A stretch of 47,384 nucleotides of DNA from Perkinsus chesapeaki ATCC PRA-425 (taxonomy: Eukaryota; Protista; Perkinsozoa): positions 1 to 47,384 of the forward strand of contig JAAPAO010000247.1 in the NCBI GenBank assembly GCA_013115145.1, written 5' to 3'. Within the stretch, counting starts at the first letter, position 1. Each line of letters opens with the position of its first letter. The notes under the pieces are model-generated. The model worked only from the letters and a program-made list of their open reading frames with translations. It searched no databases and was not told the DNA's origin. The position numbers were made by a program, and so were the translations under genes. Positions 1,767-38,344 of the stretch are shown in pieces.

Positions 1767-3995
1767 ATGAAGTTCAGAACATTCCCGCCGGCCAGGGTCG
1801 CCATTACCGGAGCGAGAGGCTCTGTTGGCACTAATTTGGCATTCAGGGTTGCCATGGGCGACATGCTTGGTATCTTTGGAAATCTTTATAGTGCGTAAAG
1901 ATATCCTTCAGGTGTTAATCAGCCAGTTATTCTCCATCTTTACTCTCGCGATCGGGAAGCTCTGCGTGGTTTGGTCCTCGAATTGGAGGACACTTGCGCC
2001 CCGCTCCTGGCCAAGGTGGTTGCTACCGATAATTATGAAGAAGCCTTCGGCGATGCCGACTATGCATGCCTTGTTGGCTCTCCACCTCGCCAAGCTGGTG
2101 AGTGGGAATGGCGGTTTATCTTTGTCTTATTGTGTTATACTTTGAGATAGATGGACATTTATATAGAGTTCGGCCTTGTTAAAGTTGGTTTCAGTAGTGT
2201 AAATAATATAACGAATTTGATTACCATTAATAATTTTTGTAGTACTATTCACTTCAGCATTATATCTATAATACTATGTTATTGCATCTCATCTTGTTGT
2301 ATAGTATCTTTCTCGAAATAGGAAGTATTAATTACAGTTCTAATTGCCCTCAGGTATGGAAAGGTCCGACCTGCTGCAGATTTCGGGAGCGCTCTTTAAG
2401 CAAGAGGGGACGATACTAGGCGAGGTTGCCAGTAAGGACTGCAAAGTTGTGGTGGTTGGCAACCCAGCGAATACCAACGCTCTCATCGCCGCCTCCAATT
2501 CTAAGTAGGATCGGGTCATGAGACTTGGGCGAAATTCGCCCGGCGAATTTCCGGCTCTTCGGTATTCTCATCGAAGGGCATCCGGCAAAATATATTTTCG
2601 AATGAAACGTGATTTGATAAATTATTAGATTTTCGGTGGAAATAGATTCCCTTCAGGAACGTCCCGGCCGAGAACTTCACCGCGATGACTCGTCTCGACC
2701 ACAATAGGGGTCTCCTTCAGCTCGCCCACTGCATCAACGCTCATCATGAAGGGCTTAATATCCACCCCACCCATATTGACAACTTTGTCATTTGGGGTAA
2801 CCATTCTCCGAATATGTATCCCGATGTTAATCATGCTACAGTGAGAGGCAGGAAGGTAAGGGAGGGAGGGAGAGTGTTGATGGTTAAATTCGCATTATTA
2901 CTATTTCAGTAAAAGCTGTTGTAGCACTGTGGTTCTAATAACAGTTTTTACGGGATCCTTTGCTGCATGCTTAATCCTTGCTAAATACTATTTCAGTAGA
3001 ACAGCTAGTGATACTTTCATTTCTATAAGTACTTTATTTCACAGTAATATTGTATTCATGTAATACTTTATTACGATAACAACTCTTACGAAAGGCTCGA
3101 ATGCAGGTTTACTATCGTCTCACGGACACCTCCTCCTCGTGTGTCAGATAAAGGATCTGGTCCCTCATCCAGATTGGGTGACTAACGAGTTCATGACCAG
3201 AGTTCAGCAAAGAGGAAAGGAGATCATCGAAGCGGCTGGTAGGTTGAGGTGCTTGCATGTCACCAGTTGTCTTTTAGGCAAATCCTCTGCTCCCTCGGCA
3301 GCTATGTCGTGCGTGGATCAGATGCGTGATTGGGCTCTGGGATCCGATAACAAATGGGTATCTATGGCAGTCATTGGGAAGAATAAGGAGAGTTATGGCA
3401 TTGACTCGTAAGCCAATATTGAACCAACTTTAATAAGCTTCGCTATCTCTCTTTAATTCTACCAAACCCTTNNNNNNNNNNNNNNNNNNNNNNNNNNNNN
3501 NNNNNNNNNNNNNNNNNNNNNNNNNNNNNNNNNNNNNNNNNNNNNNNNNNNNNNNNNNNNNNNNNNNNNATTCCTATTCCCTTTAATTCTACCAAACCCT
3601 TTCCTATTCCCTTTAATTCTACCAAACCCTTTCCTATTCCCTTTAATTCTACCAAACCCTTTCCTATTCCCTTTAATTCTACCAAACCCTTTCCTATTCC
3701 CTTTAATTCTACCAAAGCCTTTCCTATTTCCCTTTCGTTAACGCCTTGCCTATTTATCGACGCTTCCTATCAGGTATGGCGTCGACACCGATTTATGTTT
3801 CTCTTTCCCTGTCATTACTGATGGCGACAGCTGGAAAAAGGTCGGAGGCCTGGAAATGACCGAGTAACCTGGAAGTCATCAATCTGACCTATTTTGTATC
3901 TTTCCTTGTGTAGGTTTGGATACTCCATGCTTCAACGTAACGTACAAGAACTCAAGGCCGAGCGTGACATGGTCCGCAATTTAATGGGCTGGTAA
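1767..3995 (+). CDS. MDH: Malate dehydrogenase, cytosolic/chloroplast-type MDH family. Exons approx. 1767-1869, 1912-2097, 2354-2504, 2657-2855, 3148-3238, 3278-3407, 3774-3863, 3914-3995; an upstream ATG at 1677 is possible.
   Basis: Spliced motifs [79 protein letters not shown]. The malate-binding Arg residues and catalytic His/Asp are present, and all introns are in-frame GT-AG. Confidence 0.95.
2527..2548. mobile_element. Putative hAT-type excision scar (22-bp X/X'/X) in MDH intron 2505-2656
   Basis: GGGCGAA-ATTCGCCC-GGCGAAT = 8-mer GGGCGAAT bases 1-7 + its reverse complement + bases 2-8. The pattern is directly seen; the origin is inferred. Confidence 0.7.
3451..3730. repeat. 30-bp minisatellite in MDH intron 3408-3773, interrupted by an N gap
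   Basis: Unit TTCCTATTCCCTTTAATTCTACCAAACCCT, five copies at 3571-3720 plus partial copies on both sides of the gap. Confidence 0.95.
3472..3569. other. Assembly gap (run of N) inside the 30-bp array
   Basis: Ns at 3472-3569; the true copy number is unknown. Confidence 0.99.
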
Positions 3996-4422
3996 TAATT
4001 GAAGTACTAGTAGTAAAATAATAGCACTCATTTACTCCTCGACGGCCCTCGACGGGGTTTGGTCTTGTTGAGAGTTCAATCCTATGCTATGATGAAGATA
4101 TTATTTACTGCTGCTCTATTGTGTGAACATTATTACTGTAATAGATAACGTATTTGCTACTTGTTAACAACCCGTGTGGTGAAAGTATTATTGTTATCGT
4201 TTTAAAGTGAAGTCAATTGAAGGGGCACGTGTGTTGACGAGGGGGCAGAATTCCAAGAAAATCGGTCGATTTCTGCATCAGTGCATTACAGCGCTTTGGC
4301 AATCGGAGATATTCCGCCATTGTTGGGCTTACGTGAAAGCTGGCTTGTGCAGTGAGAAGCATGGCAGAAAATGTGCGGGAAAAATGAGAAATTTTGTACG
4401 AGGTGGATTTTTCCCTTCACAC

Positions 4423-5150
4423 ATGCCGCCAAAGGTCCGGCGGGCGCTTGGTCGGGTCATCGGTGTGGTGCATGGGGACCGGAGAACCTCGGAAGCTGCG
4501 CTGGAAGTGTTGAAGGTCTTTCGGCCACAAGTAGTGTATTTGGAGGCGGACGCGAAGTCATTTAGATTGAGCGCTGAGGGTAGAGAAGGGGGGATGGGTG
4601 AATGGAGAGATGTTGTTGGGCAGATTATGGGGAATGGAAATCAAAGGGAGAAGTACCAACGTTTTTGGAAGCGAGCGACCGGCTGGAGGCAATTGGATTT
4701 CAGTTGAGAGACTCTCTGCCGAGTAAGGTGACTAGTGCATAGTAGGAACGGTGCGGTTGCCCAGGAATATGGAATGCGCCCGGTGTATTTGACCGTTTCT
4801 CTTCAAGTGGCGAAATATTTTCCGTCAAACTGTCTATTCCAACTTAGCACTAGGATTGCCTTCCGTATCATTTGAGCATATTTTTCTGGGGCTTGTTGCG
4901 TGCCGGTATAGTTGGATGGTTTTTACGTAGATGTTCGACTATTACCAGTCGATCGACTGCGGGTTGCCACAGAGCGGCGAATGCAATGGAGGCATCTGGT
5001 GTTTCCGTGGCAGCTGATTCAAGTTGGAGGTTTCTCGGGGAAGCGTAATCCGGCTCAAATGGAGAAGAAGTGTCCCTCTGCGTGGCTTACACTGTAATAT
5101 CATGGAGGGCGTTTGGGAGCGGTCGTGGACTCCCCACATTTGCCTTGGTG
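4423..5150 (+). CDS. Hypothetical multi-exon protein, possibly TraB/PrgY/GumN-like
   Basis: VIGVVHGDRRTSEAALEVLKVFRPQVVYLE resembles the TraB N-terminal motif (G.aH...S...v..vi....PdvV.vE), and a downstream GAVVDSPHL resembles VVG.GH. The exon structure after about 4590 and the end coordinate are uncertain. Confidence 0.35.
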
Positions 5151-5353
5151 TGTTAGGAAATATCAGTGGCATTGGAATGTCTGTTAGTTTTTGTTGCGGC
5201 TATAAGATTTTCTCCAGGCGGTTAACTCTGGAATCACGTCCAAAGGATACGGAAGATGATGGGCATGTAATTATTTATTTATCTATATCATTTTCCATTA
5301 CTAATAATATGCGCAAAAAAGTAATTTTAGGAGATATCTTTTCTTTCTGATCT

Positions 5354-6792
5354 ATGTGTTCCATCACTGGACTTGGTACGAGGTAGATGAGATGAAGATC
5401 TAATTGATTTAGGTACACTGAGCGGGAGCGTATCTTTGCTCAACGCGCGCACTTGGACTCGATCCGCTCTCGCTGGATGTCCGCTCGTAATGTGGTGGGC
5501 GATGACTTGGAGGTCCTTCGGGGGAAAGAGAAATCAACTGGAGAGAAAATCGACGAGTTGCCGCCGGAGCCGGAGGGGCCGCATATTCCGCTGTTTCCGG
5601 GACAAATGGATCCGCTGGCACAAGCGAAGAAAATGAGAGAAGAAGCGGAAGCTCGGCGGAAGAATCTGATGGAAAAACCGGAAGAGGACCGGCGGGAAGT
5701 TCTGGATTGTGATGTGGGAGGTCCGTGTGGGGTGGAGGATCTTTTGGAAGACCTGCAGAAGTTGCCGGACCCGCCGCTGAGCGACTCGCTGAGAATTGGC
5801 CTTGTTTGCGGGGAGGTGAGCCGGAGGAATGGGTAATATAGTAAACAGGAGCAGTTACGGTGTGTGGGTTCGGGAGAGCCGCTCGGGCTGAGTGGCAAGA
5901 ATAGAATAGGCTTATCTGGAGGTCCGCAGTGTTCGCTGGCAGACTTCCGTGGTCATCGATCGAAGTTGGGTTTCATTGACGTATGTTAGGCACACACTGA
6001 GCGAGTTAAAGGGCTGCTGGCGAGGCAAATGAGGACTAGTTTTAAGGGGCAGATGAAACAGTATGAGTACGATTTAAGGAGGCCACCGAGGGTTGATTGG
6101 GTTTATGTAATAAACGGCGAATTTGATGACTCTAATGCTGTTATATATAAGTTCCTAGGGGCAGAGCCTAGCCTGCCGCAGAGGCCTTCTAGGGACTTGA
6201 GGTGTTTTTACCGAGATCGGAAGCACGTCGACGCATCGGGACCACTTATTTGATACTTGAGGAACATGTCTACGTTGGCGGAGAAATGAGAAATCCTCCT
6301 CCGTATGAGGATTATAACGATACGAAATTTCACTTTTGTAGAGCAGCTAGAGCTCGTTTGACAGCAGTCCTCCCCGATGTTGCTTTTCAGTCCTATTACA
6401 TACTCCTTCCCTTGCTGGTTTGGATACCTCCATATTTGCTAGTGAAGTTCTTCCCGAGGAAGGAGACCCACGAGGAGAAGGCGTTAAAGGCGCCGGCGGT
6501 CTGGCAAGCTAAGGACTCTCCACCGCCAGAAGTACCCACCGAACCTTCGCCTGCCGAGGCGGAGCAAGCTCGATTGCTGGTGTGGAAAGTTGGACAACTG
6601 CAAGGAGTGGAAGACTATAAAGCGAGCGATGTACCTGAAAATGGGAACGAAACTGTGGAAATTCGACAAGTTGCCGAGGTGTTGCCACCCGCCGTGCCGG
6701 CTCGGCCGAGGGGACAGGGAGGGGTTTGGAAGAGCCGGCAGGTTATTGATGATGATGACGACGATGATGATGATGGGCGGTCCACGCGGTAG
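5354..6792 (+). CDS. Hypothetical multi-exon protein with one hydrophobic segment and an acidic C-terminal tail
   Basis: An in-frame splice MCSITGLGTR|YTERERIF joins ORF 5453-5836. Further coding-like ORFs lie at 6029-6253 and 6202-6792 (YILLPLLVWIPPYLLVKFF; poly-Asp tail). No family recognised. Confidence 0.55.
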
Positions 6793-7279
6793 AAGAAGGT
6801 TTCTGAAAGGGTCATGTTTTGTTGGGGTGGTAGAGTGATCTTGAGCAGTTTGAAGTTTTCGGTGATGCTGTTGAAGTCACCAACAGAAAGGAATGGGTAT
6901 GGCGGGAGAGGAGAGGTATTAAGGGCCTCCTTCTGTGGGGTTTCCTGTGGCCTCGGTGAAAGTGTTGAGCGAGTGCTAGAATATCTAGTTTGAAAGCGTA
7001 ACTTGGCAAGCCGTTGGGGTTGGCAGCCCTCTGCCTGACAAAATCACTAGGAGCAACACAATCGAATAGATCACAACAAAGTACTTGAATCATACTACTG
7101 GATGATATCTGATAGTTCGTTGGGTGCTCTGTAGAGGTGATTTATGTCGGTTCTTCGACAGGATGTTTCCGTCACATTGCTGTCGTCGAGGTGCTCAGAA
7201 TCTAGATATCTTATGAAAATGGCACCTTTCTAGGCTAAACGCGCTGCATTGTGGCTTAGTCGAAAGCTGACGGTTTCAG

Positions 7280-9073
7280 GTGGACAGCAGCTCTGATGAC
7301 AGTGACCTGGTGGCTGATACGGCAGATGTGGCACGGAAACTGGCAATGAGTCGGACACCAGTAGCCGCAAGTAAGTGGCTTTCGCAGGCTGTTGGTGTCG
7401 ATGCGGTATTAAATCACATACAGTGGAGTATGAGGAGGAGTCTTCGAGTTAACGTTGGAAGATTCTCAGTTGTCCGTCCTTCAGGCAGAGTGCCTCTTCC
7501 GAAGGCTCCTAGGTCTCCTGGTGGACCACTCGAGAGCACCGCAGTTGATGAGCAGATTGACAGGCCAGTGCTGCTTTCGACATGCGTTCCGCCTCCTCCG
7601 AAGCCCAGTGCGCCGAGGTCTGCACCACCAGCGAGACCACCGCGACATCGCACGACAGGCTCACCGATGAGCGTTGTGAGGCCGGCGAGGATGCCCTCGG
7701 AGACGACAGTGGCGATGGATGTAGTGCTGGATGGGGAAGGGAGGGACTTGGAGCGGAATCTTCCACAATATGTGGAGTTGCTAAAGTCTCATGGGGTGAC
7801 GGACGGCCCTGTAAAGCCAGTAAACCAGGCACCGCGTGTGTCACCAGAGCCGGAAAGCCTCGGAGTTAAACCGTCGGTAAGAATGGCGGAGGGAGATAAA
7901 CAAGAGTACGATAGGGATAGGAAGGCGGTGTATGGTCGGCTGCCGAGGAGGCCACCGGTGCAGTACGCTGGGCCGTCTATGGGGCGTGAGATTGCGCCGC
8001 TGGCGGAGCCTCGACCGAGTTTTAAAAGTGGTGCTGGTCTTCCGAGGGCTTATAATGCGTCACCGCTGTATTATGAGAGGGTGAGGCAGGAAAGGGAAGG
8101 GGAAGCTAGAGGTGTCAGAAAGGAGGAGCGATCATCACCTCGGACTAGTCAGCTACCAGCGCCGCCGCCGCCACCGTCCTCTGTTGCTCGGCGAGTGGAG
8201 GCGGAGCCGACAAGCTCGCCAGTTGCCGAATATGAGTATGTTCCTTACGTGAAGACCAACGAGATATCCGGTTTTAACTCGGCGGAACTGAGCCCGGAGC
8301 CGAGTCGGTCGTGGACGGTACAGCCACCCCGGGGGGCAGGTGGCCCGTGGACCGTTCAGCCGGGGCGGGAAAAGGATGGTCGTGGGGGAATTAGTTGGGA
8401 TCGAGCGGCAGAGGAACTTGAGGACCTGCCGCGAGACAGCTCTTGCAGGTCTTCTCATGAACACGCGGGGTACGACGACCGTCTTAGCGAGGTTGGCAGG
8501 GATGAGGAAAGATACTCGGATGCGCACGCGGAAGATTTTGAGGGCGGTAAAGAAAGGTCGTATAGTGGAGGGTACTCGAGGAGAAGCGATGAAGATTCGC
8601 CAAGATATGGGCATACATCTGATGAGGAGTCGGAGACCGACGGTTACTCGGGTGACAGTTACAGCAGCGGTGGCGGCTATCATCGCGGGAAGGGTGGCGG
8701 CTCGTCAGGGAGGAGGAGGGCAGCAAGCGACAGTAGGTCATCGGAAGATGGAGAGTGGAGCTCTTCGGAGAACGGTTATTCGGAGGACGAGGGCGAGTCG
8801 TCGGTTAGCTCAGGAAAGAGGCGCTATAGTGAAGCGGTGTCGTACAGAGAAGATTTGGCGGAAATACGGTATGAAAGCTCACCTAGACCTTCGTGGGAGA
8901 GTGTCCCGAAGATCGATCCTATTTTCATTAAAGGGACCAAAGGGGGTGGCGGACGTCGACCGGTGGGAGCGGATAAGATAAGAACCGGACAGGCCGATGC
9001 TGTCTTGCCCAGCTTCAACAGAAGTAAGGAGGAAAGTTGGAATAGAGCGGTGATGAAAATCGGCAGATTTTGA
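7280..9073 (+). CDS. Low-complexity Pro/Ser/Arg/Glu-rich protein, one long exon (small 5' exon(s) probably upstream)
   Basis: 597-codon open frame beginning right after a TTTCAG acceptor (7279). The composition suggests intrinsic disorder; no domain recognised. Confidence 0.75.
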   Translation: MDSSSDDSDLVADTADVARKLAMSRTPVAASKWLSQAVGVDAVLNHIQWSMRRSLRVNVGRFSVVRPSGRVPLPKAPRSPGGPLESTAVDEQIDRPVLLSTCVPPPPKPSAPRSAPPARPPRHRTTGSPMSVVRPARMPSETTVAMDVVLDGEGRDLERNLPQYVELLKSHGVTDGPVKPVNQAPRVSPEPESLGVKPSVRMAEGDKQEYDRDRKAVYGRLPRRPPVQYAGPSMGREIAPLAEPRPSFKSGAGLPRAYNASPLYYERVRQEREGEARGVRKEERSSPRTSQLPAPPPPPSSVARRVEAEPTSSPVAEYEYVPYVKTNEISGFNSAELSPEPSRSWTVQPPRGAGGPWTVQPGREKDGRGGISWDRAAEELEDLPRDSSCRSSHEHAGYDDRLSEVGRDEERYSDAHAEDFEGGKERSYSGGYSRRSDEDSPRYGHTSDEESETDGYSGDSYSSGGGYHRGKGGGSSGRRRAASDSRSSEDGEWSSSENGYSEDEGESSVSSGKRRYSEAVSYREDLAEIRYESSPRPSWESVPKIDPIFIKGTKGGGGRRPVGADKIRTGQADAVLPSFNRSKEESWNRAVMKIGRF

Positions 9074-9272
9074 TTGAACTAGTTCAGACTTCGAAAACTA
9101 CCTGGGCAGTTTGGTTTGAAGCAATGATGGTAATTCTGTTATGTTTTTGGGAGGCTTCATGTCGTGGACCGCGCTAGGAAAACTGATCCACCGGGGCCAC
9201 GTGTTCCAGCTGCTGGTTCCTGTTTCAAGGCGTATTGGCTGCGTTGTAGATACTGTGAAGCCGAGCGAGATA

Positions 9273-11030
9273 ATGGGGGTGTTCAAGTCTAAGCCGACAG
9301 TGGAGGTGACATCAACGACATCTGTGGCACTGGAGGAGCCTCCACCAGCCACGCCTGCCAAGAGTGCGATGGATAACACTGGGGAGGCTAAGGTGGCGTG
9401 GATGACGGGGGTGCTGTGGTGGATTGCTAAGTTGGATGGAGTGTGGTATATACGAGGAAATGCTGGCAGCTCGGTAAAGCATTACTTAAAGCCGGTGGGT
9501 CGGAGGAAGGGGGAGGGGGGATTTGACGGAAGTTTGGTAGATTTCTGTAACTCCAACGTTGGAGTTATAATTCACGTCATAGAAAATACTATTTCCTATG
9601 ACGATTGATCGGGAAAGTCTCGGGCAAGTTGAGAGAGGGTGATTGATATCGATACAGGGGTAACTAGATGTGAGATTGTTAACATTGTCTTACCTATCTT
9701 ATCAGAGCTTGAGGTAAAGGTCCCATACGGTATGTCCCCTCATTTAGATTGATGTGTCGACGGCGGAGAAAGGAAGGTTCATGGAGCTCCAACCGGATGG
9801 TGTATCGAGGCCAGCCGGTTATTTAATACTTAAACCGTAAGGCGTTGTTCTATCGGTTGGGTGTGATGGTACTCAGAGCCATATTGGCTATAAGGTTGGT
9901 TAAGTACAGTTCGACTACTAGTGCTCCGCGCTAGTATTGATTCCCTGTCACATGAGCGCGTCGATGTTGACCTACTTTGGATCTTTACCGTTGGTTGAAA
10001 GATATCTTTTTAGGCCTGAGCAACGGCACTTGAATAATTATTTTTACACCGATTTAATTGAATTAGAAGATCTACGGCCTGCCTTGGACAAAGGCGCCTC
10101 ATGGCAGTTGACTGAGGGTAAGACAAGGTCAGCGCCTTATGACAGTGCGACTAGAAAGAGCACTGTGTTATTGGCGTACAGCTTGACAGCATTGTGTGCT
10201 ACTGTCCCCAATTAACTGCATATAATTCGAGACATAATTCATAGAGCGTTATTATTCCATCTCCGACACCAAAACATGTCATCCTGATGGTTAGTGTCTC
10301 AGGTTGCTTCAATTCCGATTTTCGAACCCTTACCTTTGTACGTTCGTCGGTGGAAAGCGAGGTAAGCAAAGAGGGAATCCTAGCTTGATGCGAGGTCTCA
10401 ACGCCAACCTGTGGGGGTTCAGGGCGGCGATACGCACTGGTTGGTATTCGACAGAAGCCCAAGGGTGAAAGGTGGCACGCCAGAAAGTCAACTAAGTCGC
10501 AAAAGCAGCGAGCCTGTGGACACTCCGGAGAAGTCGAGACCGATGATGACGCATCATGTGGATGAGCGATGGAAGGCATGGAGCGGGCAGGGGTGGGACT
10601 GGGAGAATGGAGGGAAGTCTCGGCGGTGGAAGGATGGTGGAACACAGCAGCAGCAGCACTGGGAGCGCTGCGAGTGGGACGCATGCGAGAAGGGGTGGGG
10701 AGGTGGAAAGAAGGCCGCTGCTGTCTTTGATTGGAACAGTATCGAGTATCACCCGGATTGGCGGAGGTTCACTGGTGAATGGTACGGCTTCAAGCAATAT
10801 GGAAACGGTAAGAATTGGCTCGTATTCCCGCCTGTGGAGTTATGTTGTTGTGTAGCATCTGTATTGAGATTCATTCTGTTGTAGGTAAACGTCCAACTTT
10901 CAAGTCGCGAGAGCTGCCGGGGCCACACAAGGTGAGCGGGTTCGATTCTCACTTCGAGCATATTGTCGAAACTCTGAGAAGTGAAGTCCGTTTTTACTAG
11001 GTTTCCTAAGTTGGACTCATAGTGAATAGT
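9273..11030 (+). CDS. Hypothetical multi-exon gene(s) including a Trp/Gly-rich segment; boundaries uncertain
   Basis: Coding-like ORF pieces at 9273-9460 (MGVFKSKP...), 9937-10110 and 10411-10805, with plausible GT/AG sites. No consistent splice path was established. Confidence 0.35.
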
Positions 11031-11640
11031 ACTGTGAACTATTGATATTCTTAACATTGAATTCGATGTCACGATGGAGCTTTCCAAATTCCGAGAAAGA
11101 TTCATCGTTGTATGCATGCATGTAGCAGTGGAAGACTCTCCAAACTGGAGACTCCAAAAAGTGGAAGCCGTCTGTTATTGGTTTACTTAGTATTGAGCGC
11201 AGAATGAATAGTATTGTGAGCTATTAAGGAAGCTTCATTACGTTGAATGTAATGTGGCAGTTGCCCTTGTGGGAGACCTCTTGCGTATCTTTGTTGTGTG
11301 CGTGCATCTCGAGGCACATCAAAAAGTCATGAAATAGAATTCAAGCCTGTCATGAAACGGTTGATCGATTTATCCAGTAGTTATCGTTGTAGTGACCTGC
11401 TTTGAAGAATCATTTTAAGCCTTTACGCAGAAAAGAATTGAAAAATTGCCAATTTGACCAGTTTGGGACGTTTTGGGTCTTTCAAGGTTGAATGGTGGTG
11501 TGGTTATAAGGTAGTGCTGCCTATGTGAGTTGTACTGTACCTATTGCATCCTTGCTAATAATGCTCATTACTTCTCATGCTGTTATTAGAGTCAAATGAA
11601 GTCGAACGATTGATGATTGTTATAAAACAGGTTGTTATGT

Positions 11641-11757
11641 ACTCGAAATGATTGTTTACTCGTATTGGTTACTCGAAATGATTGTTTACTCGTATTGGTT
11701 ACTCGAAATGATTGTTTACTCGTATTGGTTACTCGTAATGATTGTTATGTACTCGAA
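11641..11757. repeat. 30-bp tandem repeat (3 full copies plus a degenerate one)
   Basis: Unit ACTCGAAATGATTGTTTACTCGTATTGGTT at 11641, 11671 and 11701, degenerate at 11731. Confidence 0.95.
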
Positions 11758-11837
11758 GATCTCGGGTTTCCCTGTGTGCTTGAAGAACTCGAGCTATCAG
11801 GGCAGCGTTACTAATTGAATTCGGATTACCCTACTTA

Positions 11838-12750
11838 TTGGGAATAGAAAAGCCGAGTCAGCTTGTCTGGAGGCATGTTGTTCAGGACGATAACTGCATC
11901 GATAATGCCACTATTCTATTTGTATGGGGGATACCCAGCGGTTTCACTGAGGACGATCTTCATAAGGCCTTCTCGCAGTATGGGGAAATCCAGGAAGCTA
12001 AGGTGGGACTTCATCTCCTTTGCTTTCTGTGTTGTATATCGGTCATCCGAGTTTTCATTTCTTGTATGAGCTACTTTGCTGCCAGGTTAAGCGGAGCGAT
12101 CGACTTGAAGGAAGTTTAGGGTTCGGTTATGGATGGATAAGATACAAAGAAAGGTCAGAATGTGAATACTGTATATCGCAAGCCCACCGGAAGCTCATTT
12201 TACAAGGAAGGAAGTATCCAGTTGAGGTGATGTCATTTACTTGGTGTTTCACTGTAATGGATCGGATTATTAGGTTCGACTATTCATGGAAAGATACTTT
12301 TTCCGACGTTATGGGCAGATGTTGAAGGAGGTACGTTTCGGCTTTGTTCATCCTTATCGACCTATCGTTAGGATATCCCTAAGAGGAGTGGATACTGGCT
12401 GAAGGTCCTTAACAACATTGACTATCATTCTTCGGACTATGGCTACCGTTTTGTTCTTCGAGTTTTCAACCATACGGTGGTCGAATTTAATACAAAGAGG
12501 AAAGAAGCAGTCTTGCATAATGGGCGATGCTCTATGCGAGTGGTTGCTTTCGTTATGAATCTCTTCCTTGAAAACACCGCGGACTGCAAGGTTGATAATT
12601 ATCATTCTCCTGGCGAAGTTGATGAGAACTACCGAGTAACTGATAGCGGTTCTTTTTGATAGAATTACCGTTGTCAGGTTTACAAGAACTTCTCTTGTCG
12701 AGGAGCGACCAACAGCGAAAAATTCGTTTCCGGTATGCACTTAGATCTTG
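11838..12750 (+). CDS. RRM-domain RNA-binding protein (start and 3' end uncertain)
   Basis: RNP2-like LFVWGIP with FTEDDLHKAFSQYGEIQEAK, spliced to RNP1-like SLGFGYGWIRY...YPVE|VRLF. In-frame GT-AG introns at about 12003-12085 and 12226-12272. Confidence 0.75.
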
Positions 12751-15666: not shown

Positions 15667-15688
15667 AGAGGTTGAACCTCTGAGGTTC
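15667..15688. mobile_element. Putative hAT-type excision scar (22-bp X/X'/X), intergenic
   Basis: AGAGGTT-GAACCTCT-GAGGTTC; inferred 8-mer AGAGGTTC. Confidence 0.7.
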
Positions 15689-22243: not shown

Positions 22244-22265
22244 CACGGTGCCATCGTGACGGTGG
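22244..22265. mobile_element. Putative excision scar with one mismatch
   Basis: CACGGTG-CCATCGTG-ACGGTGG; the expected centre is CCACCGTG (single C>T). Confidence 0.6.
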
Positions 22266-22326: not shown

Positions 22327-24390
22327 ATGAAGCTGACCGCTTTCCACCCTCTTCTTGCGATAGTTGTCGGATGGGGCAATGATAAGAACAAGCCAACCGG
22401 AGGTCAACACAGGCCAACCCAAGTGGAGATTCCCTTCAACGAGTTTGGAGAACTCTCCCACAGTACTTTCCACAACTTCATCGAGCTCTTTATTATCTTT
22501 AGGTCAACTTCAGCACATCCAATCAACAGTTTTTCACGACAAAAAGGCGAACCCAGGAGAAATTGGAGGACTTATTGTTACACCTGATGGACGGGAGCTT
22601 CTTGCTGTGACTGCAAATGCGTAAGTTGTTGCTAACATCACATATCCACACATCTCATTAGTCAATTCCTTTCCTTGCGGCTTGCTGATAGAAGAGACAA
22701 TCTGTTTGAAATTGAGAAGCTTTGGAGGCATGAAATGCTCAATATCGAAGGAGAAGTGATGACCCAAGATGAATGTGGGTTTATAAAGACTGTTTCGATA
22801 TTGTCTTATCATTCCTCTCTATCAGGCTCACCGTGGGGTTTGACTACTGGAGCTGTCTATGGCGGGAGCGTCAAAGGCGATTTTTACGTTACTTGCGCGA
22901 ATAATCCAGGAATAGGTTTGCAGGTCCCGGACCCGTGCATCACTTTGCGGTATTGGTTGCTGCAACCGATGCTGCCTCAGAATCATGCGTTATTGCTGTG
23001 AACATCAGTAATATTCTTCAGATTCAAAGATAATGCTGTCTCGGATGTGGCCTTAGCGTCTGTTTGGGAATCTTGTGAAACAAATCCCGCGATGACTGCT
23101 GTACTGAAGCTACGTAGGTGAGTGTTGGGGTGTATAGTAATTGCTGTCCAACCAGGTGAATATGAAGATGCCGTGCTGCTGGTCGTTTATTATGAGTGGA
23201 TAGAGGCCAACCCCTCCTTCTCCGGCGTTGCGGTCCCCACTGGAAGTACAGTGGATGGAGTCAAAGTGCTCACCATCGTTGTAGCCAAGAGCGAGTTCAT
23301 GAGGACTGCCAATCCCGTCTTGTTTGTCAGATGCATGGTGACTATCAGTTGGTCAGCATGTCCCAGTTCAACAACGGTGATGTCATGATGCTACTCAACA
23401 AGTAACTTTGTGAATCCTAAAGCAATGTGATGTTTCTTCAGGCCCAATGCCCCTGAAGGTAACAGAGAGATGATCATTGCTTATTCGACTGCCGCCGATG
23501 TCTCTGCCGCTGTGCATCTTCTCTCACCACTCTCCCCGAAGGTCCTTCTCAGGCTCCGGGAAACAGATGGGTAGGGATTGTTGCAAATATCGTGTTTCCG
23601 TCAGGGTTGATGTCCAGGGTTCCCGCACCAGGCGCTCGCTTTATTCAATTCATTCTTCATCGTTTCACGCTACGCTGCTACCACACACTGTCGAATGACT
23701 TTCGTCCATGGTCTGCTATCACCATATTCGCTCATTTTTAGTACCCGCCGTTCCACAGGTACAACATCGGGGATGTGAAAGGCCTAGCTATACAGGAAGA
23801 TCCGAAGACTGGCCGTTCCTTTATCTACATTATCGGTAACATATATAATCACGCAGAGGTGAGATAAGATAGGTGAACTTCGTAGGGATAACTCTCCGTC
23901 CTTTCTTTCAGAATAGGCTGGAAATGCAATTGGCAAAATATGCTTGGACGCCGAAAGTGAAATCCGAATAAGCCAGTGATTCCCTGGCAGTGAAGATACC
24001 CTACAGTGGTTCGGAATGTGCATTTGTGCCATTGGCACAGTGCCACTCGGTTCTCATCTGCCGACGGTCGGCAGCCGACCTGCTTTCTCAAACAATGATT
24101 CATGATGTATCTTATTCTGACTTTTCTTAGTCGCTCGGGCGTCTATCAGACTAAGGTAAACTCATTTTTGCTTCGGCTTTTTCATTCGGTCTCACGACAA
24201 CAACCACTACAAGTCTTCGACTGTTAGTGTATAGTAGTGTTGTTACATCTACAAACTGCGTAAAGGGCCACAGATGTCCATCGTTAAAACCATATCATAA
24301 TATTTGTGTTCTACAGAGTAAATAATATAACCTAGTATTAACGCAGGCTGTGACGGAGATTTCTTGCACACAGCCTACGGTACCTTTACG
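22327..24390 (+). CDS. Putative secreted protein with beta-propeller-like blades; multi-exon, 3' end uncertain
   Basis: Signal-peptide-like start MKLTAFHPLLAIVVG. Blade-like segments EIGGLIVTPDGRELLAVT, PWGLTTGAVYGG...FYVTC and VKGLAIQEDPKTGRSFIYII are separated by short GT-AG introns. Confidence 0.5.
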
Positions 24391-24440
24391 GTAAGTTTCA
24401 ACACGGTATCCCTCTCCGAGGTCTTATTCCCTTAATTGGC

Positions 24441-24738
24441 CTTATATGCCCCTTGTAGGTGCCTTCATTGACCTTATATGCCCCTTGTAGGTGCCTTCAT
24501 TGACCTTATATGCCCCTTGTAGGTGCCCTTATTGACCTTATATGCCCCTTGTAGGTGCCCTTATTGACCTTATATGCCCCTCGTAGGTGCCCTTATTGAC
24601 CTTATATTCCCCTCGTAGGTGCCCTTATTGACCTTATATGCCCCTTGTAGGTGCCCTTATTGACCTTATATGCCCCTTGTAGGTGCCCTTATTGACCTTA
24701 TATGCCCCTCGTAGGTGCCCTTATTGACCTTATATGCC
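24441..24738. repeat. 32-bp minisatellite, 9 copies plus a partial, after a GTAAG donor at about 24391
   Basis: Unit CTTATATGCCCCTTGTAGGTGCCCTTATTGAC starting at 24441 with period 32 up to 24729. Minor variants occur (CCTTC/CCCTT, TTG/TCG); there are no spacers. Confidence 0.97.
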
Positions 24739-24862: not shown

Positions 24863-24884
24863 GTGACGCCGCGTCACTGACGCG
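24863..24884. mobile_element. Putative hAT-type excision scar (22-bp X/X'/X)
   Basis: GTGACGC-CGCGTCAC-TGACGCG; inferred 8-mer GTGACGCG. Confidence 0.7.
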
Positions 24885-25285
24885 CCGGATATTTGCTTGC
24901 GGTCCCTGTAGTTGATCTCCCTGATCTGTATGCGATCCTGTATCTCATCACTGTGTAGCTACCGAGTACAAACAGCTTCCTCGGAGCCTCATGAGATTCA
25001 GTCGAAGAGGAGCAAGCAACAGAATTATTGACAAACAGCTACTCAACATCATCAAGGATGACTAGGAACGTTGAACTATATAGCAGTCAGATACGAATCG
25101 ATGATCCAGATATTGATACTCTCTCTTCGCATTACTAGTGGACAAATCTTTAGACCAAGATCGGATTCGACGTGGCATACGAGCCACGATAGCCTTCTTT
25201 CACAAAGAAGGATTTTATACATCTGACAATAGTAACTTTACAAAGCCACAGAATCATTTGCACTACGGTAGGGCTCCCTTCGACT

Positions 25286-25430
25286 CATAACGTCGAAAAG
25301 GTTATCTTTCCATGAATAGTCGAACCTAATAATCCGATCCATCACAGTGAAACACCAAGTACATGACATCACCTCAACTGGATACTTTCTTCCTTGTAAA
25401 GTAAGCTTCGGGCGGCCTTCACATTCTGAC
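25286..25430 (-). pseudogene. Inverted, intron-containing fragment of the RRM gene (copy of about 12154-12313)
   Basis: The reverse complement reads TTTACAAGGAAGAAAGTATCCAGTTGAG-GTGATGTCATGTACTTGG...GGATTATTAG-GTTCGACTATTCATGGAAAGATA, nearly identical to the RRM exon-intron-exon. The ORF track gives the matching peptide LQGRKYPVEVM. Confidence 0.9.
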
Positions 25431-25856
25431 TTCATTTTTTTCGTTCATCATGGACGAATGAATTCTGTAACACCGACGACGTTCTGGTAACGGTAAATAG
25501 TATGCAAGATATCTCTATATTTACAACGGCAATAATGATGCAGTATAAGTATACGACGGTGGAGCCTGTGAGGGAGGTGGAATGGTTACGAATTAGGAAC
25601 TGAAAGGGACAGCATTACACAATCCCATACCTCTGCCCAGCACCGAATAGCGTTACCTTTTATCACGAACTTACTATCAATTTAGTTTACCTAATTTCAT
25701 ATCATAACGCGACACATGCAATCCACCGTCAGTCGACATTCAAATTTTACAATATAAAATAATTTTATAACACAGAAGATTAATTCTATAGATTCTGTTT
25801 TCTACAGCTGACCATTCGAATAGGATGAATGCCTGTTATTTTAAAATGATACCAGT

Positions 25857-27460: not shown

Positions 27461-28191
27461 TAATACAACAAATAACTGGGAACGATAACAATACACCAGT
27501 TTCACAGAGCGGGCTGTGTTCGATGACAGGACGAAATCGTGGAGAAGGCGTGACGAAATTGATGGAGCCGTGGAGCTTATGGAGCTCCACACGGGGGACG
27601 TGGCGTTATGGGCACCTCTAAGGCTTTTTACGGAAAGCTCTTTTCATCAGGCCATTCGGCGCTTAGGTTATTTTATTGATTGGGCGATGGGTCAAATCCT
27701 GGTTGGGTCACTTCTTGCGTATTTATTTCTAACCACGACGACGTGCACGCATGAACACGACGCAACTCGCAGTATTTCGTGACAGCAGACTTTTCAGCGA
27801 GTGTGGCGAGGTTTGATTGATAATATAATCATCAGAATATCGAAATGAGAATTGGAGAAGACATAATTCGACCTATTTAAGAATCTTTCACCTCGAGCAT
27901 CTTTACCCTTCGGATAGCACCTACTGGTTGAGGAAAGATACTCCTTATTACCCTATCAATTAGTCTGCTGTATGGCTGAGGAGAAGGTCCATAAGCTTCC
28001 CTAAAACCCCCTGCACACGGTTTAGCAGCAAATATGGGATCAAATAACATTTAAGCTAGTGAGCTAGCTTTGTCGCTAGTGGGCACTAGGGGAGATTGCC
28101 CATTGTTCACATTTTAAAAGGTGTACAGTATTATCAACTTTTGTATAGGCTTTCTCTATCCAATAAGCAATATCAGGCTAATAGGACGAGG

Positions 28192-31100: not shown

Positions 31101-33509
31101 TTAGTTCCCGAGATCCCGACAAGGTCCCGTGATGTCAACAAAAAGCGGTTTCGGCGAGTCATGTGTTGCTCAGACACTATCAATTAGTCGTTGAACGTTC
31201 GCGGCTGCTGACGGTTTTCCTCCTGATCAGGTGTTTGACGCTATCTCATACGATAAAGGTTCCCAGATGGTTAGGATGCTGTATGCTATCCTTGGTGCGG
31301 ATACGTTCCGTAAAGGTTGCCAGTTGTATATGCATAAATATGAATATGGCAGTACTGTCACTTCTCAGTTGTGGGAGGCATTTGAGGAGGCAAGTGAAGG
31401 ATTAACATGGAGGAATATTAGTCATTGTGCGCATTAGGGTATCTTTTATAGTGCGTAGTAAGGGTATAATATATGACTGTATTCTTTATAGTGCGTATAA
31501 GGGTATCTTCCATTATGCGAGCCCTCTGTTGTACTACAACACCTCCCTGTCATGTATCTGAAAGCCCTCGAGCATGTTTAATCCTTACCTTACTCTCACC
31601 ATTGTTCAGGCCTCTGGAAAGCAATTAAAGGATATGATGGCCAGTTGGACGGAGCAGATGGGTTATCCTATTATCGAAGTTGGTCCAGTTGTCAACGGCA
31701 AGTGTAAAGTGACCCAGTCCTACTTCCTTGGAGACGGTTCGGTCCAACCTGGTGACTCTGACAAGCACTGGATCGTTCCGATCTTTGTCGGATCTAATAA
31801 GACGCCTGCTGGCAGTAATGGTGACCTTACCATCATGACCGAGAGGGAGATGGAAATCGCTGTGGATGGCCAAGCGAAGTGGGTGTCCTTCAAGTTCGGG
31901 GCCCTGGTGCCTTATAGAGTTCAATACAAGTCGAACGAGATGTGGTCTTCGCTTGTTAAAGGTATTCGAGATGGTGAGCTATCTGTAAAGGATCGTATTG
32001 CTGTTATCGATGATATCTGGGCCATGGTTAAAGCGGGTCGCTCCATGCCCGAGGAAGCCACTAATACGTTGAAGGCATTCGCGAAGGAGGAGGACCCTGA
32101 TGTGTGGCAGGCTTTGCGTGGTGTGATCGCGGGTATGTCTACAATGTGCCGAGGTGTCGGGCAATCTGAGGGGTTAAATCGTTTGGTTGCGGCGATGATC
32201 ACACCGGTGCTGGCCAAGATTGGCTGGGAGGCTTCCTATGGCGAGGACATCAAAACGAGACAGCTACGGTCGAATCTGGTGGCGCTCGCGAGCGTGCATT
32301 GCAGGGAGAACAAGGAGTATGTCAAGATTGCTGTCGATATGATGGAGCACTTCTTCGCCGACCAGTCGAGTCTGGCCGATGATATTCGCCAATCGATTTT
32401 CCGTCTTGCCCTTGGTGGCTCCAATGTTGAGGTATCCGAGAAGTTATGGCACAAGTTGATGAAGGTGGCAGAGGATCCTCATACTGCCCAAGGCACTCGA
32501 GTGGATGCCTTCGCTACTTTGGGGTAAGCAAATGATCATTAATGTGTGTTGTTGATGAGGCTCGCGTAATATAATCGTTTTAGTGTGGGAGAACTAATAG
32601 TTGATTGCAACGGGTGTTGTATACGGATAAAGGTTCGAAACAGATTTCATGTGGCTCTGTTATCACAGTTATTCCTGGTCACTTGTGGACTGGCTAATAT
32701 CATCTTTACTAATACGAGTTCATTACGTCTTTTTCAATTTTTCTGGTTGACATTCGTCTTTTGCGATCGACATGTTATACCTCTATTCACAACATCATTT
32801 CCTAGTGTTTTTACACACTAGTTTTTGCACACTGTTTTTACACTTTTAGACCGTATTTTTATTATTTCGGCATGCTGCTATATATAACTTTGTTTTTCGC
32901 TTGCCTATCATTCTCTTTCAGGTTCGTTACCGATCCAGTGTTAAAGCAACGTACCCTAGACTGGTCTCTCAGCTCATCAGTGAAGCCTCAGGATTTCTTC
33001 CAGCCAATGCTTGGTAAGAGGGCTAATCGAGGGGTCGTTGTCGGAATCACCAGTTCTTACCAAAACTAATATGGCTTTTGCTAGACCGCCCAATATGGGT
33101 ATTCCCGTCACCTGTGTAGCTTAGATGACATCATCTCAGGTGTTCGTGCTTCCGGAGCCGAGGCGGCCAAAGGTTGCTGGAACTGGCTTGAGGCCAACTT
33201 CCCTGCAGTATTCGCCAGAGTGTCCACTTCAAGACCGAACCTTCTCACCAACGTATTCAACTGCTGTGCTGGTGGCTCTTATACGGAAGATATGGCAGAA
33301 AGAGTTGAGGCTCTTGGCAAGAAATACAACCTCAAGATTGTAGGCGGAGCGAAGCGAGGAATGTTTGACATTTTTGATTTGATCAGGTTGCAAGGGCTTT
33401 GTCGCAGCTTTGCGAGTCTATTAGAGCGAACGCTCGTCTCGTCGATTCGGCGAAGTCGAGTGTTGTTGCGAGCGGTGACTATTGGAATGCTTTAACTACT
33501 GCTATGTGA
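28192..33509 (+). CDS. M1-family zinc aminopeptidase, puromycin-sensitive aminopeptidase-like, about 14 exons
   Basis: [25 protein letters not shown] (30382-30396), HELSH-x18-E (from 30558), [18 protein letters not shown] and an ERAP1-C-like C-terminal region; all splices are in frame. Confidence 0.97.
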
Positions 33510-34128
33510 AGGGCATTATTATCACGCTGTTTTACCGGCATATATGTCTCGGAGTTTCATTAGCTTATTTGGTGATTGCGTTTGAAGTTGAGGGTGGGGG
33601 AGCGACGTAAGACCCGAGATTGCGACACTAATCTCATATTAGTGAACCGCGCTCAGATGCAAAAGTAGGCCACCGATACTGCCTGGACGGTTGAGCAAAC
33701 GGAATCACATGGGGCATGTCAGCACGACAAACTATACAAGGAAGCACTTCGTCCGAAGTTAGATTGATAAGTTGATCGCGAACACTGTGGAATAAATAGT
33801 ATTTAACGTTCAAGTCTACGGGCTTAAAAACATAACAAGTGTGCTGCGCTTTATCAACTTTCAAATGGCAAACTGGAGATGCCTGAACTGACCAAATGCA
33901 ACGGGAGCAACTAGCAATCGGGACGCAAACCTTCTTAGCTACCAAGGCTTCGCGATTGCTCTGGGGGGGACAGTAAAGCCCACTTGAACCGGTGTCTTAA
34001 GAGGTAATTTTCATGAATATATCGGCACGTTTTAGCTTATTCTCTGTCGCGAAAATTTTTTGGTCAAGAAGCCATACTTCGGCGGGCCTGACGTTCAGCA
34101 CCCCATCTCTAGTTGGTTGTTTTGCCTG

Positions 34129-36593
34129 ATGTCAAGTACATTTGCTGGGTTCTCAACTCGTGTCGGTATACCCAGCTTCATCGCGGGGCTTATTGTCGGG
34201 GGAGCTGGTATGAGTATGCAGAGGCAACACACAGCTCTACCGGGTGACAGTCAGGAACCTGTTGCCAAGCCTCAAGGTCAGTGTTGAGAATTAATGGTAT
34301 TTCTGTTGGCTTTTATGGCATGAACGCAAACTATTTAATATCGATGATATGTGTTTACAAAGGTGGATGCATAGATTCATTTTACTTGCGATGTGTCATG
34401 ACCTGCGATTCATCTCATGGATGCATCAGGTTGGTAATGATACCTCATTGCGGCATAAAGGCTATATAACACTAGAAACCCTCTATGAGAAGGATTAGCC
34501 TTCTCACTCTTATGTGGATTGAATTCTGAGGCGCACCATGCTATGAAGCTACTGTATCTTTATAACAGTGACAAACTTTTCATCAAACTTTCGATTATAT
34601 CTCCGCACAAGTAACCCTGCTCGGCCCGCAAGTAACGCATTTCTCTTTTTGAGGTTAGTACCAATATCAACTAGCTACCCTCTTATCAGAATCCCCTCAT
34701 GAAGAAAAGACCAAGCACTATCCCTCGGCGAAGCTCCCATCTCAGGATCACATCCTCACAAGACAGTCCTATACCAGTAGCGCTAACTACGCTACAAAGA
34801 TACCAAACTGGGTAGGAAACGGTTTTCTGCTAATATTACAGTGCTGCTCTTCGGCAGGTAGCTGAAGCCATTACGTACAATAGCGTAACGAGTAAAAACG
34901 CAGACAGAAAGAGAGCTGCGTTCAAAGCTGATGAAGACGTTCCTGAGATGTAAGGATCCACATTGTTCACGACAGCACAACCATTGCGAATTTGAGCAGC
35001 ATCGAGAATTTGCTGATTCTTCCGTGTCTAGTGCCCGCTGCGTTCTGTAGAGTAGGAATATCGGCAGGCGTAACTCGCCTCGGGCAAGTTGCATCGCCAA
35101 AACCTCGTGAACTGTACGACGTGAATGATGTAAGTGTCAGCGAGCTCAATGGACCTCCAACGGGAATTTCTTGAACAAAACTCTGGAAAATTTTTTATAT
35201 TTTTTTACTGAGCCACGTTCATTTAGTGCACATAAGTGCCACTCTATTCAGCTTCCTATTCCACCCAGGTTCCGAGCATCAAATGCGGACTACTGGGATT
35301 CGGGCTGGTCACGAGGACATCTGTCCATGGCCGGCGCACACAAGGATGACCAGAACGCCCAGAACGACACTTTCCTCCTTAGTGGGAACATCGTAAGTCA
35401 GCACTTTAAATGCTCTCGGAAATCGACGTTTTCAGGTCCCTCAAGATTTGAGTATGAACGGTTCCGATTGGTTACGGCTCGAGTAGGGCAGCTTAACGTT
35501 GGTGTGTGTAGGGTACTTACTTAGGTATCTGACTTTGGATTTGGCAAGAGAGCATGGTCCTGATTCCGATGACGCTGTTTATGTTGTCTCTGGACCATTA
35601 TGGATGGCTGACTTCCCTGAGGATCATCTCACCAAAGAGATCGGAGCAAGGTCGCACACTAAGGTGAGCTGTTGGTATGATTTTATGGTCTAGGAAGAGC
35701 TGTTAAGCTCCAAGAACTTTTACGTTGTTGACTTGCTAAGCCTATCATATGTTTGTATTGAAGCGGCGAGTGTGTTGGCTAGTTACTACCTACCACTTCT
35801 ACTAGTTGCCTAGTGACCAGTATGGACTCACGACGAGTTGCCCATCGCATTTCACTGTTGCAAGCTGCAACTGCAACTTGCACCTCTCGTCGCTCCTTCG
35901 ATGGAAGAAATAGCACTGCTTTTCGTTATGGTTTGTCACGTTCAAAATTCGTGGGGTTGTTACGCCTCACAGACTAGCCTCCCATTTATCCTGTAGCTAC
36001 TAGCAATAGTTGTTATTTAGGTTATCAACGACGGCAGCAACGGTAAGCCGAAGCGGTATCAGGTCAAGTACGAGATCATAGGCGACAACGAGCTGGCCGT
36101 GCCTACCCATCTCTTCAAGGTTGTCTACGACACGAAAACGAATTCCTCGGCGGCATTCATTATGCCAAACAAGCCTATTCGGTACGAGAAGAATCTGAAA
36201 CAGTACCAGGTCCCAATCGAGAAGGTCGAGAAGGCTACTGGCTTGGACTTGTCTGCGATGAAAAAGGGGACAGATTTGTGTGGTCCCGAGAACCGCTGTG
36301 TTAAGAAGGGTGGTCGACGTATAAACTCGTGGCGGGTATATGGTTCCATCCAGAGCGCCAAGGACAGGGAGACCTTCATTAGAAGAGTGAAGAGAGCTAT
36401 TGATAGGAACTACTTGACGGATGACAACTTCCTTCTAACGAAGATGATTCGAGAAGAGATGATCGATCATCAAGGAGCGACGAATCCAGTGGAATTACTC
36501 GGCCCCGGAGAGTATGCTGAGAAGCTCCAAGAGGCCTTCGATCGGATTGATGCTCGCGAGCAGGAAAGAAGAGCTGTTAAACAATCTGCTTGA
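34129..36593 (+). CDS. EXOG: Mitochondrial-type DNA/RNA non-specific nuclease (EndoG/Nuc1/EXOG family) with EXOG-like features
   Basis: N-terminal hydrophobic SFIAGLIVGGAG; KIPNW|VAE; FKADEDVPEM|FRASNADYWDSGWSRGH (SRGH at 35309-35320); NI|VPQD...W..LE; VYVVSGPL; VKYEIIGD...VPTHLFKVV. A C-terminal extension follows the LC...C motif. The family call is firm; the EXOG subfamily call is tentative. Confidence 0.85.
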
Positions 36594-36648
36594 TTTGCAG
36601 TAACTGACGTTTTCGAGTCATTCGCGGTTTGAGTTAAGAAGTTTGTGA

Positions 36649-38344
36649 TCATCGAGTCGATGACAATCTACCTGCGCCAGGGTCGTCTTTACTACTTAAA
36701 CGCCCATATAATACATGGCATATATGCCAGTATAACACTAATGACATTAGTCTAATGTGACGTAAATATCTCTATGCAATGTGTGCATGTCACTAATACG
36801 ACTCTATCGAGCGTGGTTTATCATCATTATGAAGGCCTTACGTGTTACGTACTACTGTTTTACATCACCAAGGGGACTTTTCAAGGTGCCCTTCTCATTA
36901 CCCATGAATACAACAATGAATGAATCAATAATTAGGTGACTGAGTCACCGTGACTCTGATAATTATTGTACGGAATGTATTACCAACAATCCCTGTATAA
37001 GACGACTGCAGTCACCAAGATATATTGTATTCAAAGCATACGAACCAGTGTTACCCACCAGTATTATTTCAAATGAGGCCATGGTAGACCATAGAAACGG
37101 TCATCACTAACGGAGCCGCACAGTGTGCGGCGCACACTCCCTTTTTTACGGTACGGTAACTGAGTTACCGTAACTCAACTACTATATCTAACTATTAACT
37201 GTAGTTATATACAATACTATCTAACTATTATCGCCAATGGCCAATCGCCAATCGGATGACATCCACCGTCCTGTTCTTTCTGAACAGGGCCAGTAGCCCT
37301 GGGCCACAACTCAGGTAGGGTCATTTAAGTTGTAGTCTATGAAAAGTTATCTCTACAACTTGTAGAGATAACTTCAAGTTATTAACTTGTCATAACTGAA
37401 AACTATTTATGATCTTAGAAAGCGACTATCGGGTAGTCTGACGGAATCGATGAACGAGCCCCTGTGATGGATAGCACTAAACTCATGATGAGAAGCCAGA
37501 TATTGTTAGTGTGACTGTCTGGGTTCCAGTCTCCATCATAGCTCGAAGGAAAAGGGCCTTTACTAAGGCACAACTCGCAAATAGTAGTACTGTACTACTA
37601 CTACTGTGTTAGATTCTTCGTCCTCTGGTACCATCTTAACTCGAGGCTTATTGGAATTAGACATTCAATTTTATACAAGTAAAATGTTAATAATACAATT
37701 GGCAGTAAAACAGCTGATGTATAATAATTACACTATAATCAGTATTAGAACACTATCAGTAACAAATAATCAACTCCTCAGTCTAATAATCATAGAAGTG
37801 TTCACGGCGTGAACTTCACGCTAGGCTATAACGTAGCTTAAAGATGTTGTGCTTCCATTGTGATAAATGAGTAGAGGCAAATAAATAAAGGGCTGCACAC
37901 AATCAATAAGCGCTCGCCACACTTCTGTAGTAGAGATAATACCAGATGGCATCTGGCAGATGCCGAGTCTCTGCGGGAGCAGACAAAGGGACGTTCAGAA
38001 AAAGGTAGAAATGACCCTAAATTAGATGCAAATAATGGCGGGGCAGCATAGCTAGTACCGTACCGTATAATTCACGGCGTGAATGCAATAACGATAACAA
38101 TAATGGGAGGTATTGCAGCCTGTAATTTGCAGGTACTAGCGCTAAGCTGCGCCGTGACACAATGTACGAAACCATCTTGCACAAAATCTGGTTAGCGAAA
38201 GGAGAAATGGACTGTAGCCGCTACAGTGTAGCGGCAGTGAAATATCGCGAATAGAGGGATTGCGCACTGGTAAGGTGCAACCCCACGGGGGTTGCACAGT
38301 AATTCGGATTTCTATTTTATGTGGCACATAAAATAGAAATCCGA
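36649..38344. mobile_element. Intergenic cluster of putative transposon excision scars and 1-nt-centred palindromes
   Basis: Perfect 22-mers at 36737, 36935, 37116, 37155, 37368, 37800, 37942 and 38212; a one-mismatch copy at 38112. Single palindromes at 36649-36663, 37344-37374, 37582-37600, 38070-38084, 38275-38297 and 38304-38344. Confidence 0.75.

Follow-up and report, generated by a model that had tools for sequence, protein, structure and literature searches.

The target duplications made by hAT transposons are 8 bp long, and the footprints that excision of these elements has left in experiments are short and varied. Zhou et al. are said to have found in 2004 that the hAT transposase Hermes nicks 1 nucleotide (nt) into the flank. 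Here, we describe a 22-bp motif that recurs along a 47,384-nt contig of Perkinsus chesapeaki ATCC PRA-425, an oyster-parasite relative (contig JAAPAO010000247.1; the whole stretch analysed is called the window below), and that has the geometry of such an excision. Each copy, called a scar in what follows, is built from an 8-mer core X by the rule X[1-7] + revcomp(X[1-8]) + X[2-8], where revcomp is the reverse complement. The footprints of Ac/Ds, Tam3, Ascot-1 and Hermes resemble the scars in their 8-bp duplication, in their inverted copies of the flank centred on a complementary base and in their use of microhomology. In Ac/Ds footprints, the added palindromes have as their centre the complement of the transposon-adjacent base; in yeast, these footprints share with the scars the long palindrome arms, which reach up to 20 nt, and 88-89% of them involve microhomology (PMC5873905). 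Experimental footprints vary, however, mostly by a few bases gained or lost, whereas one +14-bp product dominates in Perkinsus and, unlike the experimental hAT footprints, forms an abundant genomic record in a protist with no element in view. The P-nucleotides at V(D)J coding joints (RAG and Artemis) are also alike, in that a flank sealed as a hairpin by cleavage of the transposase type is opened off-centre to give palindromic additions. RAG differs by nicking at the exact boundary, so that its palindromes lack a central base; a P-tract generally measures 1-4 nt, and no target-duplication homology is involved.

A systematic pattern scan of the window found 12 perfect 22-mers. An earlier note, made from the sequence alone, had listed 11 of them, all of which proved exact with the 8-mers as given, and had missed the copy at 24059 (core TGCCGACC). 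Six further copies carry one mismatch (22244, 23973, 24025, 36704, 37286 and 38112); 22244 and 38112 had been seen before and the other four are added here. About ten copies carry two mismatches, including those at 11137, 13660, 28604, 30139, 37584, 37719, 38063 and 47221, with 13660 and 28604 recovered from the earlier note. First-order Markov shuffles of the window contained no perfect copy, no one-mismatch copy and ~0.6 two-mismatch copies, so that some of the two-mismatch copies may be due to chance. The analytic expectation was 1.8e-4 perfect 22-mers per window, in agreement with the ~2e-4 per 47 kb estimated earlier, and the abundance of the 22-mer is confirmed to lie far above chance. 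The 18 cores of the perfect and one-mismatch copies have no sequence in common, in keeping with the earlier note's description of the motif as sequence-independent, and this argues against binding sites. The cores are mildly enriched in guanine and cytosine (GC; 56% vs 47%, P=0.014). The assembly gap (3472-3569) has no bearing on the finding: the closest motif, at 2527-2548, is 923 bp away, and none touches the gap or needs the sequence to run unbroken through it. The 18 sites are as follows.

2527..2548, strand., perfect 22-bp scar, core GGGCGAAT
15667..15688, strand., perfect 22-bp scar, core AGAGGTTC
22244..22265, strand., one-mismatch scar, core CACGGTGG
23973..23994, strand., one-mismatch scar, core CCAGTGAA, newly found
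24025..24046, strand., one-mismatch scar, core TGTGCCAA, newly found
24059..24080, strand., perfect 22-bp scar, core TGCCGACC, newly found
24863..24884, strand., perfect 22-bp scar, core GTGACGCG
36704..36725, strand., one-mismatch scar, core CCATATAT, opens the spacer cluster
36737..36758, strand., perfect scar, core ACTAATGT, identical in contigs X1, X4 and X5
36935..36956, strand., perfect scar, core GGTGACTC
37116..37137, strand., perfect scar, core CCGCACAC
37155..37176, strand., perfect scar, core GGTAACTC
37286..37307, strand., one-mismatch scar, core AGGGCCAC
37368..37389, strand., perfect scar, core ATAACTTG, adjoins the 15-nt-arm palindrome 37344-37374
37800..37821, strand., perfect scar, core GTTCACGC, 14 bp absent in paralogues; present in RNA contig X6
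37942..37963, strand., perfect scar, core CCAGATGC, single CCAGATGC in paralogous contig X5
38112..38133, strand., one-mismatch scar, core ATTGCAGG
38212..38233, strand., perfect scar, core CTGTAGCG, single CTGTAGCG in paralogous contig X4

The geometry of the motif is strict. When core lengths from 4 to 12 were scanned, enrichment appeared only at 8 (12 copies vs 0 in shuffles), with none at all for 6, 7 and 9-12, so the sharp peak at 8 that had been predicted was borne out. On a grid of core lengths 5-11 and offsets 0-3, the combination of core 8 and offset 1 alone stood out, and offsets 0, 2 and 3 were at chance. Four matches at core 10, offset 3 are probably the 8-type sites again, read with longer arms. 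A small excess at core 5, offset 1 (5 vs ~0.6-0.8) was dismissed, two of the five lying inside degraded 8-type scars. When the lengths of the two inverted tracts were each varied from 0 to 8, enrichment was confined to pairs totalling 8, which is the 22-mer itself, and a scan for paired palindromes at any spacing that would rebuild an 8-bp duplication picked out a centre distance of 7 only.

The palindromes of the window show a matching preference for a single central base. With arms of 7 nt or longer, 36 perfect palindromes have a 1-nt centre, against ~2 in shuffles (~15-fold), while centres of 0, 2 or 4 bases occur at chance level. Because only core 8 with offset 1 and palindromes with a 1-nt centre are enriched, some process makes inverted copies of flanking DNA around one unpaired base, in a fixed 8-bp register. 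Two long examples lie in or beside the scar cluster described below.

37344..37374, strand., perfect palindrome, 15-nt arms, single central base
38304..38344, strand., perfect palindrome, 20-nt arms, single central base

The palindrome at 38304-38344 is absent from paralogous contigs, where the right arm occurs alone, and the G at its centre complements the C found just before the right arm in the paralogue. By this comparison of sequences, the 20-nt-arm palindrome is derived, like the scars. In the same region the paralogues read ...GTGCAACC TACT GTGCAACCC CACATAAA..., with the two copies of an 8-bp direct repeat, GTGCAACC, 4 nt apart, which may be a footprint of a different kind. A neighbouring palindrome at 38269-38291, with 10-nt arms and a 3-nt centre (ACG), falls outside the 1-nt rule.

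The origin of the 22-mer can be read from copies that lack it. We compared public Logan contigs with positions 35800-39300 of the window. Two contigs from different samples and studies, X1 and X4, showed no differences over 35800-37882, and X6, from a 2017 marine metatranscriptome, carried the 37800 scar unchanged. X6 is identical to a multi-copy spacer segment, 37657-37894, which suggests either transcription of the repeat or DNA in the library. For the scars with a visible paralogue, three of three (37800, 37942 and 38212) have a copy that is exactly 14 bp shorter, these copies being diverged paralogous contigs and not alleles. At the 37800 scar, X4 record 10 and X5 record 20 omit 14 letters at 37804, and the exact 14-bp gaps at 37942 and 38212 were upheld on re-alignment. 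The two palindrome centres complement the first and the last base of the core, as the single 8-mers of the paralogues confirm. The 22-mer is therefore very probably a +14-bp derivative of a single 8-mer. A comparison of the window with itself found no paralogous segments spanning scars. The earlier note had predicted three allele states; shorter copies were seen, as paralogues, and a transposon-occupied copy was not.

Scars of the same form occur in Perkinsus olseni. Its syntenic locus (L004/L005, 22.7 kb) contains two perfect 22-mers and one one-mismatch copy, all three outside called genes, and its palindromes are also skewed toward odd centres, with 11 odd against 2 even. A further Perkinsus locus, L003, holds one one-mismatch copy. 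Because P. olseni carries 22-mers of the same form, the scar-forming process is genus-wide in Perkinsus. No 14-bp indels separated the P. olseni haplotypes (L004 vs L001, L002 and L005) in 7.7 kb of aligned, mostly genic sequence. One haplotype differs from the other (L001/L002) by a 1,953-bp insertion (L004 3565-5517), bounded by direct repeats of 221 bp that are 99.5% identical; by appearance it is a small long-terminal-repeat-type element, and it holds a 289-aa gene and a perfect 22-mer scar at 4350. Also in L004, a 200-bp repeat present three times was considered as a miniature element and rejected, since it looks like a repeated exon and has neither termini nor a duplication.

Most of the scars of the window are concentrated in one intergenic spacer.

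36594..38886, strand., spacer from the Endonuclease_NS gene to the D123/CDC123 gene, with the scar cluster

This spacer holds 8 perfect and 3 one-mismatch scars together with 3 two-mismatch candidates, and under a uniform model the clustering of the 8 perfect scars has P=4e-10. It is ~2.2 kb long here, compared with ~450 bp in P. olseni L002 and ~150 bp in L003, and the scars by themselves make up ~13% of the clustered stretch. From ~37440 onward it consists largely of multi-copy DNA, with depth up to 12x single-copy. Judged from the open reading frames (ORFs) of the window, used in place of proper gene models, all the perfect scars fall outside long frames.

These observations can be accommodated by hAT-type excision followed by annealing repair. 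Each 22-mer would be the mended donor site of a departed cut-and-paste DNA transposon with an 8-bp target-site duplication. On insertion, the element would duplicate the target word ABCDEFGH; on excision, it would nick 1 nt inside each flank, and the flanks would be sealed as hairpins. By hand derivation, the left hairpin would read ABCDEFG-H'-G'F'... and the right hairpin ...C'B'-A-BCDEFGH. If host nucleases open these hairpins several nt off the tip, on the 3' side, the ends would carry the 3' palindromic tails H'G'F'... and ABC.... Tails totalling more than 8 nt would be complementary within the duplicated word, and annealing and fill-in would always produce ABCDEFG + H'G'F'E'D'C'B'A' + BCDEFGH, a gain of 14 bp over ABCDEFGH. 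Since every tail pair longer than 8 nt in total would yield the identical 22-mer, a stereotyped outcome could arise without a fixed opening site. Opening at the tip followed by resection would instead allow the two copies of the duplication to anneal, restoring the 8-mer, and many excisions may therefore be invisible. The GC-rich cores (56% vs 47%) fit a repair that depends on annealing. The element would have hopped repeatedly over short distances into a neutral spacer beside genes, which would account for the dense cluster, whereas selection would purge scars from coding DNA because 14 bp shifts the reading frame. This hairpin and microhomology model had been put forward in the earlier note, and re-deriving it gave the 22-mer whenever the tails together exceeded 8 nt. 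Its rule for the centre base, which is to complement the terminal base that was lost, agrees with the Ac/Ds footprint literature (PMC5873905).

How far does the evidence identify the agent? Several properties expected of a hAT footprint were found: an 8-bp duplicated target, only core 8 being enriched; a 1-nt offset with complement-centred palindromes (36 vs ~2, with even centres at chance); and, in paralogues, an unoccupied copy with a single target word. The core length, the offset, the +14 bp and the centre-base rule of the earlier proposal have thus all stood, and neither its transposase nor its occupied site was found in the DNA sampled. A number of results weigh against hAT excision. The classic short hAT footprint forms are at chance in the window on the tract-length grid, and instead of diverse short footprints the window is enriched for the complete 22-mer class alone. 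No 8-bp duplication with terminal inverted repeats and no transposon-occupied allele (8-mer, element, 8-mer) was seen in ~105 kb of Perkinsus DNA (window, L001, L003 and L004), and a Pfam scan of 29 window ORFs gave no hAT, BED or other transposase domain. The Ac/Hermes target consensus nTnnnnAn does not describe the cores, T2 occurring in 5 of 18 and A7 in 6 of 18, at background level; this consensus is weak and family-specific, and the mismatch weighs only mildly. If each scar marks an independent insertion-excision cycle, fourteen of them in 1.5 kb are extremely dense. Finally, a 22-mer could revert to an 8-mer by slippage between its own 6-7-nt direct repeats. We rejected such a 22-to-8 deletion as less parsimonious, because an inverted triplication is not a starting state of random sequence, and several paralogue copies are in the 8-mer state; the 8-to-22 direction rests on parsimony, and the argument is strong. 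Searches for resident elements with 7-, 8- or 9-bp duplications and inverted termini in the window and the Perkinsus loci found none with 8 bp, and the inverted repeats of the spacer offered nothing convincing as element termini. Taken together, the 22-mers are best explained by hAT-type excision followed by annealing repair, at a probability of roughly 0.6, with the agent read from the geometry.

The scars could also have arisen with no mobile element at all, through a host nuclease or domesticated transposase that cuts with an 8-bp stagger and seals hairpins, or through polymerase template switching or snap-back that leaves an inverted triplication. The lack of any element or transposase in the DNA sampled (~105 kb and 29 window ORFs), the extremely stereotyped outcome, the extreme clustering (P=4e-10) and the lone long-arm palindromes with a single central base beside the scars would all sit well with such an origin. 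Many scars beside few resident elements are nevertheless expected and no problem in themselves, because cut-and-paste transposition is conservative, leaving one scar per hop and adding no copies. Polymerase-theta insertions and template-switch (quasi-palindrome) mutations do resemble the scars as short inverted templated insertions made through microhomology. They have no fixed length or offset, however, whereas the Perkinsus scars always have core 8 and offset 1, and neither template switching nor polymerase-theta snap-back has a known cause for these values. We know of no host break with an 8-bp stagger and a 1-nt offset. An element-free origin is for these reasons unlikely.

The same chemistry might instead be the work of another transposon that forms flank hairpins and long duplications, chiefly a Mutator-like element (MULE). 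Muta1, a MULE, resembles the scars in making hairpins on flanking DNA and 8-9-bp duplications (PMC5499845). Because MULE transposases likewise form flank hairpins (PMC5499845), the label 'hAT' is an inference from geometry alone. That geometry sets the scars apart from Muta1 and its relatives, whose repair is mostly precise, whose duplications vary and which have no known 1-nt offset. Muta1 excises precisely in more than 90% of cases, and its hairpin of 43+43 nt suggests that there is no 1-nt offset (PMC5499845). A zero offset would yield palindromes without a central base, which are at chance here, and MULE duplications measure 9 bp or vary over 8-11 bp, whereas cores of 9-11 gave 0 scars. 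A length held strictly at 8 bp and an offset of 1 nt both speak against a MULE, which we regard as distinctly unlikely.

Selection for structural motifs, either cruciform or hairpin signals or protein-binding sites, is very improbable. The 22-mers are intergenic and near gene ends, here and in P. olseni, and one occurs in an RNA contig (X6), as such signals might. Against this, they have no common sequence and paralogous copies do without them, relatives lack the spacer in which they lie, a single nucleotide is no viable loop for an RNA hairpin, and Rfam gave nothing. A sequencing or assembly artefact, suggested by the assembly gap in the window and a highly heterozygous genome, has a negligible chance of being the cause, given that two samples from different studies are identical, a third, environmental run is concordant and the motif also occurs in independent P. 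olseni assemblies.

By its Pfam matches and homologues, the window belongs to a Perkinsus species. Pfam matches in the 29 window ORFs were limited to D123, ERAP1_C, Endonuclease_NS and alpha/beta-hydrolase, and scans of the window with Rfam and for tRNAs gave no match. The order M1 peptidase, nuclease, CDC123, hydrolase is conserved, and CDC123 and the GPI-deacylase-like hydrolase are 66% and 77% identical to the P. olseni proteins. A cNMP-binding gene between CDC123 and the hydrolase was seen only in P. olseni and was not located in the window. Over the last nuclease exon (36064-36596), a second contig of comparable depth (86 vs 97) differs at 61 positions and diverges fully past the gene end, which suggests two deeply diverged haplotypes or copies, with the scar-rich spacer in only one.

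Several further features of the window were recorded. Tandem arrays lie at 1-131 (58 bp x 2.3), 3571-3735 (30 bp x 5.5, abutting the assembly gap), 11640-11746 (30 bp x 3.6) and 24429-24738 (32 bp x 9.7), the last of them between the scar group 23973-24080 and the scar at 24863. A 135-bp segment occurs as inverted copies at 25286-25419 and 12180-12313, 13 kb apart and with 92% identity. The region 4000-10900 has a GC skew of +0.2 to +0.27 and long plus-strand ORFs, one of 597 aa, with no Pfam match, and could represent one large gene, either lineage-specific or of low complexity.

In the literature searched, this signature is described neither for Perkinsus nor, as a record spanning the genome, for any other organism. 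Single palindromic hAT footprints belong to textbook knowledge; what appears to be new is one dominant +14-bp product kept in large numbers. Genomes do not normally reveal the history of cut-and-paste transposition, because it is conservative. If the scars are hAT-type excision products, the 22-mers would record insertion-excision cycles one by one, in a form that is sequence-independent and can be counted and dated. With 0.1-0.25 scars per kb there would be thousands genome-wide, and transposition rates, target choice and local hopping would become measurable from one assembly; the pattern scan can be applied to any genome. The origin of the single-base-centred palindromes and of the expanded spacers would be explained as well. 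A more speculative proposal, which we hold to be unlikely, is that a host-retained hAT-like hairpin nuclease, or a very mobile and tolerated low-copy element, repeatedly breaks intergenic 'accessory' DNA and, together with annealing-biased repair, acts as a distinct mutational engine in Perkinsus. The scars would then be more than debris left behind by a selfish element, and palindrome-rich spacers would grow 14 bp at a time, which could drive rapid intergenic growth relative to sister species. If they have the origin favoured here, the scars would provide a readout of the repair of hairpin-capped breaks in a little-studied alveolate parasite, for which the data indicate hairpins opened far off centre and ends then annealed.

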